From the sequence record OR545507.1: 64,000 bases of DNA. One strand, 5' to 3'. The notes beneath the pieces are model-generated. The model was not told the origin of the DNA and did no database searches. It worked only from the letters and a program-made list of their open reading frames with translations. Below, in pieces: positions 1 to 64,000 of the stretch (positions within the stretch are counted from its first letter, which is position 1; every line of letters starts with the position of its first letter). The translations under genes and the position numbers were made by a program.

Positions 1-526
1 TACCAAAACCAGCACTCATATATTGAGAGTATTTATTGTCTTTTTTCGATGCTTCAATTGCATCATCAACGGCAGTGTTTGCACGTTGTTGTCCAGCTAA
101 GTCATAACTGTCTTCTGGTTTACCAAAATCCACTCCAATAACTGGTTCATCAACATCATCAAAATCGATATCATCTTCCAAATCAGTCATTTCAATTTGA
201 CGAGGTTCATCTTTACTACGAACACGAATCAATGCTTCTGTCATGCTTAGTAAATTGCCAATTTCATACATTAGTACATTTGATTGAACGCCACGATGAC
301 ATTTAAAGTCAAACATCCAAATTTCACCACAATCTAATTCATAGAAATCTAATGGTTTTTCCATAAAAATTGTTTTCTTTAGTGCTCCAATTTCAAACGC
401 ATCATAGCGATCCATTAGTCGCTGGGTTACTTTACTAAGTTGCTCAGGTGTTGGTTCAACTGCAAACTTAACTCGGTATTCATAAACTGGTTTCTTTTCA
501 GTTAGGATTTGTTGTAATCTATTCAT
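1..526 (-). CDS. Hypothetical protein, partial (runs off left edge)
   Basis: GGAG RBS then ATG at 526; open frame MNRLQQILTEKKPVYEYRVKF... to the window edge; not in the ORF track. Confidence 0.75.
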   Translation of the reverse strand, partial: MNRLQQILTEKKPVYEYRVKFAVEPTPEQLSKVTQRLMDRYDAFEIGALKKTIFMEKPLDFYELDCGEIWMFDFKCHRGVQSNVLMYEIGNLLSMTEALIRVRSKDEPRQIEMTDLEDDIDFDDVDEPVIGVDFGKPEDSYDLAGQQRANTAVDDAIEASKKDNKYSQYMSAGFG

Positions 527-553
527 TTTAATAACTCCATAAGGTCGTTTAAG

Positions 554-1108
554 TTATTTATTTCTGTTCATTGATGCAAGCATTTCATTGCGGGTTTTGT
601 GAACTACGGTTTGCCCTTCAATTGCATCTGGGTCACCAACAGACTCAAGTTCTTTTTTTGGTTTCAAATTTAGTTCAATTTCCATTTTGTCTTTTTTAAG
701 TTGGAGATCAACTAATTTAACATCTGAATCAATTATTTTTGCATGAGCATCAAGAGCTATTTTTAGCATAGAGTTTGCAGCATTAATCATCTCTGCTGCA
801 AAACGATCTTCACAATTAAATGCTCTATCAAAAATATCCTCAAACTTTCGTTCTGCCATTTGTGCTAAACGATCCAATTGGGTTTTTCTTGCAGTAATAT
901 CAGGTAATTCCCTCAACTGTACACGCATTGCTTTGAGCTTTTCCATTGCAATCTTTGCATCTTCCAATGATATTTCAGTTTCAGTTTTGTCTTCATCCTG
1001 ATACAAATCCATTTCTGTATCTTCTTCTGGTTCTTGACCAGTCATTTCAATCCATTGTTGAGCACTAGGTAATCCCAGTGCTTCGTCTATTTGTGGTTTA
1101 GATTTCAT
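554..1108 (-). CDS. Hypothetical helical protein in head/tail block, weakly terminase-small-subunit-like
   Basis: 184-aa ORF with acidic N-terminus, helical core and C-terminal [11 protein letters not shown]; family assignment is an impression only. Confidence 0.4.
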
Positions 1109-1567
1109 TTTTTGTATAGATTCCTTTCTGTTATAATTTTAAACTCCAATCCGGTTATTTTTACAAAATTCCATTGCATAAGCCCATTTGGATTGGTTTA
1201 TAGCAACTGCAATTTTTTCTTTTTTGGATTTAGCCAACTCCATGTGGCATTGTTTGTATGGCTTGACTTCTAGTACTTGAGCATGTTGCTTACCATCAGC
1301 ACCAATATATAGTACATAAAAATCAGGCCAGTACTGGTGGACTTGTCCATCTATTGGACTAACATAAGGAATACTAAACGGCTCAATACTCCATTCTATG
1401 ACTGCTGGATTATTATCCAATGAAATCATTATGTCCTTTTCCCATGAACTACGGTATATTGGTTGATTATTACTTTTATACTTTTTAATGTTTTTTATAG
1501 GAAAGATACCTTGAGCTTGCTTAGTATTTGTTATCTTTGCTGGGTTAAATTGTTGATTGAAAGCCAT
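1105..1567 (-). CDS. T4 gp4-like head completion nuclease, +1 frameshift at about 1153
   Basis: YRSSWE...[10 protein letters not shown]...YWPDFYV...EVKP motifs. The +1 frame after AAC-C gives [15 protein letters not shown], the expected gp4-type ending, and its TGA overlaps the next ATG. Confidence 0.85.
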
Positions 1568-2661
1568 TAAAAATCTCCTAAAATGTTACCTAATCCGAAT
1601 TTTGAACTTGCTTCAGAAACCAAACTACCAAACCCTATGGCGTTAGCACCTCTGGTTACAGCAGAACCTATGTTTCGAATTGTGTCAGGAGTAATGTCAC
1701 CACGCAATATATCACCAGCACTACTTATTATATCACTAACTGACGTACCTGCTCGGATAATTTTACCAATTGTTAAAATTCCTTTGGTTTTGTCGTCTAA
1801 TTCACCAAAATACTTAAAAAACCCACTAACGCCAAGACCTTCTGTGTCTGTTATTAGTTGTGCTATTTCCATAGTTGGTACACCAATACTCAAATATCCT
1901 TCTGGACCAAAGTTGTTACATGCTTCATATCGCATAGTTAACGATATCAACGAAGGGTCTGCTTCACTTTCCATAGATTTGGTTTCTAATTGTACGTCTT
2001 CTATGAATACATTTATCATGTTATGTACAGTATAAGTTTCATTATCAATCTCATATATGTTAATTGATTTGAAAAAGTACTGATTATCGTAGTTTCCATT
2101 GTTCATAACTGAACGTCCCCAGTTACCACCTAAACCATTAAAGTTTTCAGGTGTACTTAGAACATCATTTCTATATGACTGTGGATTTTTATCAAAGAAA
2201 TCACCATAATAAAACTTTCTATATGCATCCATTAGTAAGTAACCAGCACCATCAACGGTATCATAAAAAACGACATTACTTGGTTTGTAAACAATGTCAC
2301 CAGTAACTAGTCGTTTTTTGTTATATTGGTTTACTGTTTCAATATTAAATGAAAAACTTGGCAAAGTTACATCTTTAACAAAACATGATACATTATTAAC
2401 ATCAAAATCAGTATGTGTATCTGGTAATTGAGTTTTAATAAAGTTTTTCGCAAAAGGTGTTAACACAAATTCTATAATAAAACTATTTTTGAATTTAGGT
2501 AAATTGTAAAATGAAAACCCCATTTCACCTGCTGTACCAAACACACGTTGTGCAGCATTATAGTTCTGAAAAGCAGGTTCACGAACAATGTTTATATTAT
2601 CAATAACGCCATTTACAATACTTGTACCAGTACTGACAAATGAATCAAAAAAATCACTCAT
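1567..2661 (-). CDS. Tail tube-like / baseplate tube-cap (gp48/gp54-like) protein
   Basis: gp19-fold-like segments ([11 protein letters not shown]...VTLPSFSF...NQYNKKR); tandem with two tube paralogs. Confidence 0.55.
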
Positions 2662-2672
2662 TCATTATCTCC

Positions 2673-62674: not shown

Positions 62675-63418
62675 TTACCTTTTGAAACGATTGAATGAGT
62701 ACTCATCTTTTTCTTTACGTAAGTATCTCATCCCACCACTTTGTGGAGTAGCGAGAGTTAAGTCACCCGTCAAGAACTGACTATCAATCCAAATGCGATT
62801 ACCGTAAATGAGTGGGTCTGTAACTGCTGTATGTCCACTAAAGACACAATGCACTCCATCTAACTTAGGTGCATAATATGTATTATTAGTTCTACAATAA
62901 TCGAATGTTTTTCTATCCCACAAGCACTTATCAATTATATCAGCACTAAGTGATTTTGTCCCATTAACAAATCGTTCCCATGTTGTATATTCCAACGGAA
63001 CTCCAGCATGAACTAACCCAATCTTCAATCCTCGGTGATTGATTTGGATAATCATAGGGAGATCCTTTAAGTACTGACGAAAGAATTGAATGCCTGTTCC
63101 TCCAACTTCATCAAGGAATTTATCACCACCATTACTTATCCAACAATGATACCAATCTCGAAGTGTTTCCGAATCAACGCACATCATCTCATGATTACCC
63201 GCAATCATGTAACGATTTTCTCCGAACAAAAATTCAAAAAGGAGCTTTGAATTTTGTTCTCCACGGTCGATAATATCACCTACACTGAAAACATAATCAT
63301 TGTGTGTAATACCAAATTCTTTCACTGTAGCATCCCATAGTTTACCATTACCATGCAAATCACCTACAATGTATAAATCTTTATCATCAGGTACAGTTAC
63401 TTCTAAGAAGTGTTTCAT
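62675..63418 (-). CDS. Ser/Thr protein phosphatase (lambda-phosphatase/PPP family)
   Basis: GDLHG, GDIIDRG, GNHE, HAG, SGHT. Confidence 0.92.
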   Translation of the reverse strand: MKHFLEVTVPDDKDLYIVGDLHGNGKLWDATVKEFGITHNDYVFSVGDIIDRGEQNSKLLFEFLFGENRYMIAGNHEMMCVDSETLRDWYHCWISNGGDKFLDEVGGTGIQFFRQYLKDLPMIIQINHRGLKIGLVHAGVPLEYTTWERFVNGTKSLSADIIDKCLWDRKTFDYCRTNNTYYAPKLDGVHCVFSGHTAVTDPLIYGNRIWIDSQFLTGDLTLATPQSGGMRYLRKEKDEYSFNRFKR

Positions 63419-63420
63419 TA

Positions 63421-63672
63421 TTACTCCAACCATATAATATTAGTGTGTTTAGTAACTTGTGTTCCAGCAAAAGAACCATCTTTAAGATAAGTATTAATTT
63501 TAAAACGCCATTCACCACCACTAATATACATATCAGTAATAATATACTTTCCATACCCTCTGGAGTTTATTAATCGTACTTCTTGACCAATATATTTTGG
63601 CTTCAGATCATTTATAAAATCATCAGCCAAAGACATAAGATATCGCAAATGTGATAAGTCAGTGTTGAACAT
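63421..63672 (-). CDS. Hypothetical protein
   Basis: 83-aa ORF. Confidence 0.6.
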   Translation of the reverse strand: MFNTDLSHLRYLMSLADDFINDLKPKYIGQEVRLINSRGYGKYIITDMYISGGEWRFKINTYLKDGSFAGTQVTKHTNIIWLE

Positions 63673-63887
63673 TATTTCTTTCTCTTATATTTGTTAATAA
63701 TATCTTGGGTAAGTGAAATAAAAATATATACTAATGTTACAGGCCAAATAATAGCCATCAGTGCTGCTGTTTGGAGATTCATGATAATCATGATTTCATC
63801 TTTAAAACAACCCCAATTAAGTACTAGAAAGTTGGTTATAAATGTAACAAATGCTACAAAACCATATATTGCAAAAAATGTTATCAT
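63672..63887 (-). CDS. Small membrane protein
   Basis: Two TM; AIIWPVTLV. Confidence 0.6.
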   Translation of the reverse strand: MITFFAIYGFVAFVTFITNFLVLNWGCFKDEIMIIMNLQTAALMAIIWPVTLVYIFISLTQDIINKYKRKK

Positions 63888-63889
63888 AA

Positions 63890-64000
63890 TTATTCCTCAT
63901 CATCCACTAAAACAAGATAATCCAAACTTAACTCGGTATCTATGTAACAATCACAATTCAAGTACTCAATTTCAGCACCTATAGTTCTCCCATTCTTAAA
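63890..64000 (-). CDS. 3' end of a hypothetical gene (partial)
   Basis: Open frame ...FKNGRTIGAEIEYLNCDC...DDEE* from the right edge. Confidence 0.55.
   Translation of the reverse strand, partial: FKNGRTIGAEIEYLNCDCYIDTELSLDYLVLVDDEE

Follow-up and report, generated by a model that had tools for sequence, protein, structure and literature searches.

The stretch of DNA considered here, 64,000 nucleotides from sequence record OR545507.1 (the window, always at its full length), raises the question of why a phage should carry the palindromic hexamer AGTACT at intervals of a few hundred base pairs. The window is identical to bases 232371-296370 of Escherichia phage vB_EcoM_G17 (MK327931.1; hereafter G17), the annotation of which was used. 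G17 is a RaK2-like jumbo myovirus (Asteriusvirus) of 370,817 bp with T4-like core genes; the preliminary description of this DNA, made from its letters alone, had rightly called it a phage genome. An 8-kb portion of the window is 100% identical in phage Sharanji, which matches G17 perfectly over the two stretches compared, and 98-99.7% identical in most other Asteriusviruses. With a G+C content of 33.6%, the window is 93.3% coding and contains 108 annotated coding sequences (CDS), all but two on the minus strand. These include genes for the tail sheath, neck and head-completion proteins, an anaerobic ribonucleotide reductase, a DNA ligase, a PhoH-like protein and ClpP, and many further small genes of no known function. 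The answer favoured here, with a probability of somewhat less than one half (about 0.45), is that AGTACT is the recognition site of a clade-specific dimeric DNA-binding factor, and that the site serves as an operator at early promoters and is kept throughout the genome by selection.

The sites themselves are distributed in the window as follows.

1272..63966: all 157 AGTACT sites, the first at 1272-1277 and the last at 63961-63966, with a mean spacing of 402 bp.
1329..61891: 37 sites of the octamer CAGTACTG, a subset of the AGTACT sites, the first at 1329-1336 and the last at 61884-61891.

Base composition (a zero-order model) predicts 21.5 and 0.60 copies, and the earlier manual estimates (about 156 and 37 copies, against 22 and 0.6 expected) were essentially right. 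AGTACT is the commonest hexamer of the window, ahead of TTCTTT (133 copies), and among the 64 palindromic hexamers its ratio of observed to expected copies is 9.2, the next highest being 1.7. In 100 dinucleotide-preserving shuffles of the window AGTACT occurred 16.2±3.8 times, with a maximum of 27, and the octamer 0.87±0.92 times, none of the shuffles coming near either observed count. Markov models of order 1, 2, 3 and 4 predict 17.1, 28.5, 52.9 and 127.4 copies of AGTACT, the excess over the last still corresponding to a z of 6.2. The higher orders take up part of the signal because the enriched sub-words are already built into them: under the maximal-order model GTAC, AGTAC, GTACT and AGTACT each rank first for their own length (z 7.7, 9.6, 10.2 and 6.2). 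The signal is hierarchical and it persists under higher-order models. The next most enriched hexamer of the window is CAGCAC (reverse complement GTGCTG), with 38 copies for 11 expected.

An excess of this kind might be a mere artefact of composition, codon pairs or amino acids, for instance of frequent Ser-Thr or Val-Leu dipeptides. The 150 copies observed in annotated CDS were therefore compared with four kinds of coding-aware shuffle. Shuffling of synonymous codons within genes gave 39.0±5.6 copies (z 19.7) and permutation of codons 22.6±4.6 (z 27.5); the lower figure under permutation means that protein sequence contributes a little. When amino acids, codons and dinucleotides were all preserved, 92.2±5.6 copies were obtained within genes (z 10.2) and 66.8±6.3 in the pooled version (z 13.1). 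The fourth-order expectation of 127 would also speak for an artefact, were it not that this model includes the enriched 5-mers and nevertheless leaves z 6.2, while the coding-aware shuffles leave z 10-27. The sites fall 64, 30 and 55 times in reading frames 0, 1 and 2, each frame being enriched 3- to 5-fold, and eight sites are not fully within CDS, as the claim that all three frames and non-coding DNA are involved had it. Phage T4, of similar G+C content, has 6 copies in 50 kb. Since the excess survives shuffles that keep protein, codons and dinucleotides, it is a property of the nucleic acid. A codon, amino-acid or dinucleotide artefact was rejected on these grounds and is given practically no probability. 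The preliminary description had named the loss of the excess under amino-acid-preserving shuffles or higher-order Markov models as what would overturn it; both were run, and the excess remained at every order tested.

The behaviour of AGTACT is opposite to that of other palindromes, which phages had been said to deplete. In the window GCGC is absent (30 expected), GGCC occurs 11 times for 43 expected and GATC 96 times for 182 expected, and CCATGG, CAGCTG, CGATCG and AGCGCT have no copies at all. This depletion is classical restriction avoidance standing beside the AGTACT excess; no avoidance of AGTACT, the ScaI site, is seen in the window, where it is over-represented instead.

The excess extends to the whole phage. 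The G17 record contains a 20,668-bp direct terminal repeat as two identical copies, and the unique genome amounts to 350,149 bp. In it AGTACT is the commonest 6-mer, with 902 copies for 101 (order 1) or 184 (order 2) expected, and CAGTACTG the commonest 8-mer, with 199 copies for 11 expected. The earlier wording, that the palindrome is iterated throughout the genome, is accurate for the window but not as a statement of uniformity, as 5-kb bins of G17 hold anything between no site and about 35 (up to about 7 per kb).

The distribution of the motif among other phages was surveyed in genome samples of named relatives and in 34 IMG/VR loci retrieved with the tail-sheath protein. AGTACT is the top-scoring hexamer, at 2.2-2.6 per kb, in the samples of vB_Ec-M-J, Erwinia phage Hallingskeid, Serratia phage BF, Xanthomonas phage XbC2, RaK2 and Cronobacter phage GAP32, and it is not enriched in that of Vibrio phage 2.275.O (7 copies for 11-13 expected). 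All 11 IMG/VR loci with a tail-sheath identity of at least 71% carry 1.7-2.5 sites per kb, 5-8 times the expectation, and all 23 loci at or below 58% identity carry at most 0.34 per kb. Samples of 50 kb contain 6 copies in T4, 10 in rV5 and 3 in Escherichia coli K-12, the density of G17 being 43-fold that of the E. coli sample (2.6 vs 0.06 per kb). As the enrichment is found in every relative above the upper identity limit and in none below the lower one, the AGTACT excess is a shared derived character of the RaK2-like clade, independent of the host. Four of the loci without AGTACT excess (L036 and L039-L041, 41% sheath identity) contain 8-14 copies of CTGCAG, 4-5 times the expectation, and may represent a sister lineage iterating a different palindrome.

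Within the clade individual sites come and go. When orthologues are aligned by codon, vB_Ec-M-J has a site at the same position for 64% of those in G17 (all-hexamer identity 42%), Hallingskeid for 47% (background 13%) and BF, XbC2 and GAP32 for 17-28% (background 13-14%), with site numbers unchanged. Synonymous constraint inside sites, relative to the same codons elsewhere, reaches z 3.5 in vB_Ec-M-J and z 4.4 in Hallingskeid and fades in the three more distant enriched relatives (z 0.1, 0.9 and 2.4). Density is maintained while individual sites turn over.

The anatomy of the site is that expected of an operator or of a transcription-factor site with dyad symmetry, left and right flanks being equivalent: in the window 78 sites have C before the hexamer and 70 have G after it. 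With both half-sites summed, 47% have C and 7% have G at position -1, and across the early region and the rest of the genome the shares are 45-48% for C and 6-8% for G. Further out, T or C is preferred at -2 and T at -3 and -4, which makes TTCAGTACTGAA the extended, symmetric and graded consensus. The flanks act independently of each other, the 37 copies of CAGTACTG comparing with 34.8 predicted from single flanks. Graded symmetric flanks of this type resemble, in their base preferences, the site of a dimer. Since the same preferences are found in the early region and in the remaining genome, both classes of site probably have one reader. Non-palindromic AGTAC is equally frequent in the two orientations in the window (66 sense, 63 antisense).

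The sites are also placed more regularly than by chance. They are distributed evenly along the genes of the window, where the coefficient of variation (CV) of their spacing is 0.745 for 0.99±0.08 under random placement (P ~1e-4), that of other frequent hexamers being at least 0.98. Counts in 1-kb bins give an index of dispersion of 0.49, and no two neighbouring sites are more than 1469 bp apart, where a largest gap of about 2280 bp would be expected. Nine of nine 32-kb segments of G17 are likewise under-dispersed (CV 0.74-0.92; Stouffer Z -4.5), the other frequent hexamers giving 1.02-1.41. Even spacing over the unsegmented genome was rejected, the overall CV being 1.08 because regional density differs; the evenness is local. 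Helical phasing of neighbouring sites was rejected as well, only a mild excess at 16-25 bp being found.

The closest described phenomenon is HIP1 (GCGATCGC) of cyanobacteria, to which the preliminary description had likened the motif. The likeness is statistically sound: both are short palindromes far above Markov and codon-aware expectations, present in all frames and in non-coding DNA, clade-wide, conserved above background at synonymous sites (in AGTACT over short distances) and quasi-regular, HIP1 occurring at about one per gene. The two differ in sequence, in the known cognate orphan methyltransferases of HIP1 (none is assigned in G17), in that AGTACT is found in a virus whose bacterial host lacks the motif, and in the fixed promoter registers and the gene block with an asymmetric variant that are described below. 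The function of HIP1 is still debated (PMC5861425, PMC4390886, PMC13756078). The literature on iterated palindromes is almost exclusively cyanobacterial. A full-text search, which left some subscription papers outside it, that of GAP32 among them, yielded no obvious published description of AGTACT iteration in these or other phages; none of the titles listed among the matches for the hexamer concerns RaK2-like phages, the promoter-box strings are absent from the papers listed for them, and CAGTACTG has primer-like matches only. Term searches of the Sharanji, fEgEco12, JP4, UE-S1 and RaK2 papers retrieved no motif or palindrome of this kind; in the Sharanji paper 'motif' appears once, in the methods and about protein motifs, and 'ScaI' never.

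An indirect clue to the use of the site comes from the ends of the genome. The first 25 kb of G17, which cover the terminal repeat, have 6.4 sites per kb, the small-gene blocks roughly 2-6, the replication and structural modules 0.8-2.8, and two blocks adjoining the right terminal repeat essentially none. In these first 25 kb, 83 of the 160 sites are non-coding, which amounts to about 11 per kb of non-coding DNA. The terminal repeat is crowded with tiny minus-strand genes, many of which have a near-consensus sigma-70 promoter in front of them and many a predicted terminator behind, and AGTACT is present in 30 of its 40 promoter-like sequences. Relative to the first base of the -10 hexamer it occupies two registers, one 7-8 bp upstream (19 sites; TTGACA-N9-AGTACT-G-TATAAT) and one 27 bp upstream (11 sites; AAAAAGTACTTGCA-N16-TATAAT); in further promoter classes the box overlaps both the -35 and the -10 elements (TTGACAGTACT-N10-AGTACTAT). 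GAP32, which belongs to another genus and shares about 66% nucleotide identity with G17 in common genes, has 4-8 sites per kb in its early region and nearly the same registers, at -7 (8 sites) and at -27 to -29 (14 sites), both boxes often being found in one promoter (AAA-AGTACT-TTGACA-N10-AGTACT-T-TATAAT). A like layout is seen in Klebsiella phage RaK2, in two examples only (AAAAAGTACTGGACA...CCAGTACTGTATAAT). Registers that are fixed and conserved between genera, as those of operators would be, are thus found in G17 and GAP32.

The mechanism proposed in the favoured reading is as follows. TTCAGTACTGAA, with its AGTACT core, would be read by a sequence-specific reader of double-stranded DNA; most likely this is a DNA-binding protein that forms homodimers and is encoded by the RaK2-like jumbo phages themselves. 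The early promoters of the terminal repeat are of the host (sigma-70) type, and the site, which abuts their -35 and -10 elements, would be an operator there, probably for the shut-off of early transcription. The other copies, about 900, would be held at about one per 400 bp, evenly and in all frames, by selection that acts on their local density and not on single positions. Given that the copies are kept evenly along the genome, the same reader would load along the whole phage chromosome, and the effect of this loading may be a chromosome-wide damping of transcription, compaction, or the self-marking of phage DNA.

Several observations weigh against this reading. The preliminary description had proposed a binding site for a phage protein, and the symmetric graded flanks and the fixed promoter registers support it indirectly, but no reader was found among the candidates examined, a minority of the roughly 660 G17 proteins. 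GAP32_488, with an HTH_37 domain, has no homologue in G17; G17_00144 and G17_00145, encoded beside an RpoD-like sigma gene, have no Pfam match; ten early proteins common to G17 and GAP32 have no DNA-binding assignment in Pfam or PHROG; and the homologues of rV5 gp179 and gp180 were set aside because rV5 has no AGTACT excess. The reading does not account for the benefit of the intragenic copies; promoter-like sequences of the window are not associated with AGTACT (5 carry a box for 8.1 expected), and the intragenic copies are thus not simply operators of cryptic sigma-70 promoters, a possibility that was rejected. The boxes in the early promoters could instead be contacts of RNA polymerase, and it could be methylation of the sites, not their bare sequence, that is read. 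The even spacing is not significant in single samples of Serratia phage BF, Xanthomonas phage XbC2 and RaK2. Finally, a symmetric dimer does not predict the strand-specific AGTACA found in one block of G17 and in RaK2.

In the window, the density of AGTACT is 1.9 per kb in non-coding and 2.5 per kb in coding DNA, and the sites with a bearing on promoters, or lying wholly or partly between genes, are listed here.

53506..53534, minus strand: sigma-70-type promoter-like site (TTGACT 53534-53529, 17-nt spacer, TATTAT 53511-53506) upstream of G17_00453 (CDS 52862-53470, minus strand), with an AGTACT box at 53518-53513 within the spacer, one base upstream of the -10 hexamer.
43875..43898: two AGTACT sites (43875-43880 and 43893-43898), 18 bp apart, intergenic, upstream of G17_00435 (CDS 43903-44262, minus strand).
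9369..9374: AGTACT in non-coding DNA between CDS 8375-9166 (neck protein) and CDS 9428-9805.
22712..22717 and 22904..22909: two AGTACT sites in non-coding DNA, in a 361-bp gap beside the small plus-strand gene 22539-22694.
42088..42093: AGTACT (TTCAGTACTAC) in non-coding DNA, about 25 bp upstream of the start of CDS 41647-42057 (minus strand).
51934..51939: AGTACT (AAAAGTACTAATATTATAAG) at or across the junction of CDS 51713-51910 and CDS 51941-52534 (minus strand).

The first of these appears to be the one clear early-type promoter of the window, its box lying in the register known from the terminal repeat and its activity being a prediction; the pair at 43875-43898 resembles the paired arrangements of the early region. 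As for late promoters, the T4-type motif TATAAATA occurs twice in the window, at 38578-38585 (minus strand) and 53501-53508 (plus strand), for 11.4±3.4 copies expected, and TAAATA 9 times on the plus strand for 63 expected. The copy at 38578 is situated 35 nt upstream of the start of a 2.7-kb gene (35847-38543).

The two blocks of G17 that lack AGTACT are instructive in their own right. From 334,742 to 342,464 (7.7 kb, G17_00562 to G17_00580) there is no AGTACT and no antisense AGTAC, and AGTACA occurs 41 times on the sense strand for 3.7 expected. These copies fall 14, 13 and 11 times in the three reading frames, with 3 in non-coding DNA, in unrelated contexts and often as CAGTACA; GTTCA and AGTTC are also enriched in this block. 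The homologous blocks of three relatives have the following counts.

121Q: AGTACA 41, AGTACT 1.
vB_Ec-M-J: AGTACA 44, AGTACT 0.
CMSTMSU: AGTACA 31, AGTACT 0.

Twenty of the 40 G17 AGTACA sites that could be compared are position-shared with vB_Ec-M-J, which is about 83% identical there; as half of the sites have turned over and the count has been kept, the variant is actively maintained. The syntenic neighbourhood of RaK2 (245,000-275,000, sample L059) has AGTACA 64 times sense and 23 times antisense, alongside AGTACT, a weaker bias than in the Asteriusvirus block. The second block, at about 344,900-350,150 beside the right repeat, consists of about 24 paralogous genes of some 70 residues with 0-3 copies of AGTACT and almost no GTAC-type motif, and its repeats are family-specific only (AAACTATCA, GCTGTACT). 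A strand-oriented half-site as the general unit was rejected, since along G17 no half-site skew exists outside 334.7-342.5 kb and only the AGTACA block is oriented.

Sharp, conserved and region-specific variants of this sort argue against a genome-wide mutational drive. According to such an explanation, biased mutation, repair of the very-short-patch type or gene conversion would turn near-cognate sequences into functionless AGTACT sites, and the turnover of sites at a density constant across genera would fit it, as would the hierarchical enrichment of GTAC, then AGTACT, then CAGTACTG. The expected donors are nevertheless not depleted: none of the 18 one-mismatch neighbours is (observed/expected ratios 0.72-2.19), and the central-transition variants AGTGCT and AGCACT are even enriched about two-fold, on which account a drive of the very-short-patch type was rejected. 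Non-coding DNA of the window is not richer in sites than coding DNA, the early non-coding DNA at about 11 per kb is, and sharply bounded motif-free blocks (334.7-342.5 kb and about 344.9-350.1 kb) coexist with the motif in the same genome, one of them maintaining AGTACA with turnover between genomes about 83% identical. Under-dispersed spacing and fixed promoter registers likewise speak against a neutral process. The footprint of methylation-linked mutation or repair suggested earlier was thus not borne out, and a neutral origin in general is regarded as extremely improbable.

The orientation of AGTACA evokes a signal acting in RNA, in which a phage endoribonuclease or RNA-binding protein would act on (C)AGUAC and so determine how long messages last, with most sites on early messages and fewest on late ones. 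Site density does fall from early genes to small-gene blocks to structural genes, and AGTACA is skewed to the sense strand, 41 to 0 in the G17 block and 64 to 23 in RaK2. A palindrome with symmetric flanks (C before 78 sites, G after 70) is not what such a signal would require; many copies lie inside promoters, upstream of the predicted start points, and non-palindromic AGTAC of the window shows no preference for the sense strand. A role at the RNA level is considered very unlikely.

The same block has been weighed as a polar signal on DNA. Chi, KOPS and DNA-uptake sequences resemble AGTACT in being over-represented oligomers that are kept since a DNA-tracking or DNA-binding machine reads them, and they can mark self DNA. 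A translocase or helicase-nuclease of phage or host might be attenuated or redirected at (C)AGTAC, so that phage DNA is spared or recombined while host DNA is degraded; the palindrome would serve both directions of travel, and the terminal repeats, where such an enzyme enters, have the highest density. The 43-fold excess over the E. coli sample, the peak of density in the terminal repeats, the single-orientation AGTAC sites in the 7.7-kb block near the right repeat and the annotation in G17 of a RecD-like helicase, a Cas4-type PD-(D/E)XK nuclease and SbcCD-like subunits are all in line with it. Known signals of this class are, however, asymmetric and strand-skewed, whereas AGTACT is palindromic and, along G17, unskewed except in the AGTACA block, non-palindromic AGTAC outside it having no consistent skew. 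Symmetric flanks indicate double-stranded recognition, fixed promoter registers are not expected of such a signal, and no enzyme is tied to the motif. This explanation is accordingly held to be improbable.

A more serious competitor, unlikely though it is judged to be, is that an orphan phage DNA methyltransferase recognises AGTACT, or the GTAC at its centre, and makes it an epigenetic mark, which would be compatible with a binding protein. Dense and even sites would have been chosen since a methylation-dependent process needs a site near every position, be it strand discrimination, the marking of replicated versus unreplicated DNA, protection, or methylation-sensitive promoters; the even spacing fits one site within reach of each position, and boxes touching the -10 and -35 elements could render early promoters methylation-sensitive. 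HIP1, which comes nearest to AGTACT in its statistics, has orphan methyltransferases that recognise it and a quasi-periodic distribution (PMC4390886, PMC5861425, PMC13756078). G17 itself encodes a C5-cytosine methyltransferase (PF00145, E 4e-38) and an N6-adenine methyltransferase of the Dam family (PF05869, E 7e-32), and annotated methyltransferase genes are found at a syntenic position in RaK2 and GAP32. The search for such an enzyme had been recommended at the outset; methyltransferases are present, but none is assignable to AGTACT or GTAC, specificity not being readable from sequence. The DNA of RaK2 is reported to be methylated and cut only by methylation-tolerant enzymes, and its 5-methylcytosine is placed in the CpG context, which is absent from AGTACT (PMC3622015). 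Flank preferences that extend in graded fashion to position 4 are less usual at the site of a methyltransferase than at that of a DNA-binding protein. No homologue of MutH, MutS, MutL, SeqA or Vsr appears in the G17 annotations, no search having been aimed at them, and the AGTACA block is left unexplained here too.

A further, more far-reaching reading takes the AGTACA block into account. RaK2-like phages would carry a genome-wide cis code of their own, composed of AGTACT and of at least one regional, strand-specific dialect, AGTACA, and read by one or several phage factors for self/host discrimination and for the timing of gene classes, in replacement of the T4-type self-marking by base modification. 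The DNA of fEgEco12 is reported to be cut normally by ten common restriction enzymes (PMC13070987), which excludes bulk hypermodification, and RaK2 is reported to have no hydroxymethylase and glucosyltransferase genes (PMC3622015). To judge from these two relatives, RaK2-like phages do not use modified cytosine. To our knowledge, RaK2-like jumbo phages form no nucleus either. Such a code is a doubtful proposition; if true, it would give a virus its own equivalent of HIP1, Chi or GATC.

Known systems offer partial parallels to a DNA-binding factor of the favoured type. Phage repressor operators are palindromes overlapping or touching the -35 and -10 elements of early promoters; we know of no classical operator repeated about 900 times inside coding sequence. 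The abundant proteins p6 of phi29 and TF1 of SPO1 combine the silencing of early promoters with binding throughout the phage genome, and p6 nucleates near the genome ends, to which the density peak of AGTACT in the terminal repeats may be compared by analogy. p6 reads DNA bendability and TF1 hydroxymethyluracil DNA, neither of them a discrete hexamer. The sites of SlmA and Noc are palindromes for a dimeric reader, scattered to report chromosome position, but they number tens per chromosome, unlike AGTACT at one per 400 bp. The SlmA consensus, approximately GTgAGtACTcAC, shares the AGTACT core; SlmA sites were nonetheless rejected on account of wrong flanks, G being the most depleted base at position -1 and GAGTACTC and GTNAGTACTNAC accounting for 1 of the 157 window sites and 2 of the 902 genome sites, respectively. 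Dam-methylated GATC, with SeqA and MutH, is a dense palindromic site that serves both a chromosome-wide function and the control of individual promoters, and with a few sites per kb it is about as frequent; it differs in not being over-represented in E. coli and in being depleted in the window.

Some further features of the early regions and of the genome deserve mention. Inside the terminal repeat of G17, some 800 bp from its inner edge, about 16 tandem 8-bp units (TCTAGCCG / TCCAGACG) form an iteron-like array at 19,768-19,895; the non-coding DNA in which they lie, 1.9 kb long, is also where the best TTCAGTACTGAA palindromes are situated. The early region of GAP32 (sample L021, 2,500-25,000) has a second promoter class in which the -35 element TTGAC lies within a G/C-rich hairpin (GGGG-TTGAC-N-CCCC), which suggests combined terminator-promoter units. 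The early gene G17_00015 of the terminal repeat (5,438-5,692) matches the ParE-like toxin domain PF24732 (E 4.6e-11) and is conserved in GAP32 (GAP32_031). At 79,693-79,784 G17 has an annotated tRNA-Ser with anticodon ACT, which would read AGT, the first half of an in-frame AGTACT, and a tRNA-Thr(TGT) is located near it.

Phages normally purge short palindromes, and G17 purges many, yet one palindromic hexamer is its commonest word. That several genera with different hosts have retained AGTACT at a density of about one per 400 bp points to an unrecognised, conserved and chromosome-wide process in this large and little-understood group of jumbo phages. For practical work, AGTACT is a highly specific signature of the RaK2-like clade in metagenomes, and its count predicts about 900 ScaI sites, which is relevant for the handling of these genomes. 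The system should be open to direct testing: the site is known, the promoter boxes provide a simple read-out, and Sharanji grows on E. coli K-12 MG1655. It offers a second, independent system for a 30-year-old question, the purpose of highly iterated palindromes, and could reveal how RaK2-like phages switch off their early genes and tell their own DNA from that of the host.

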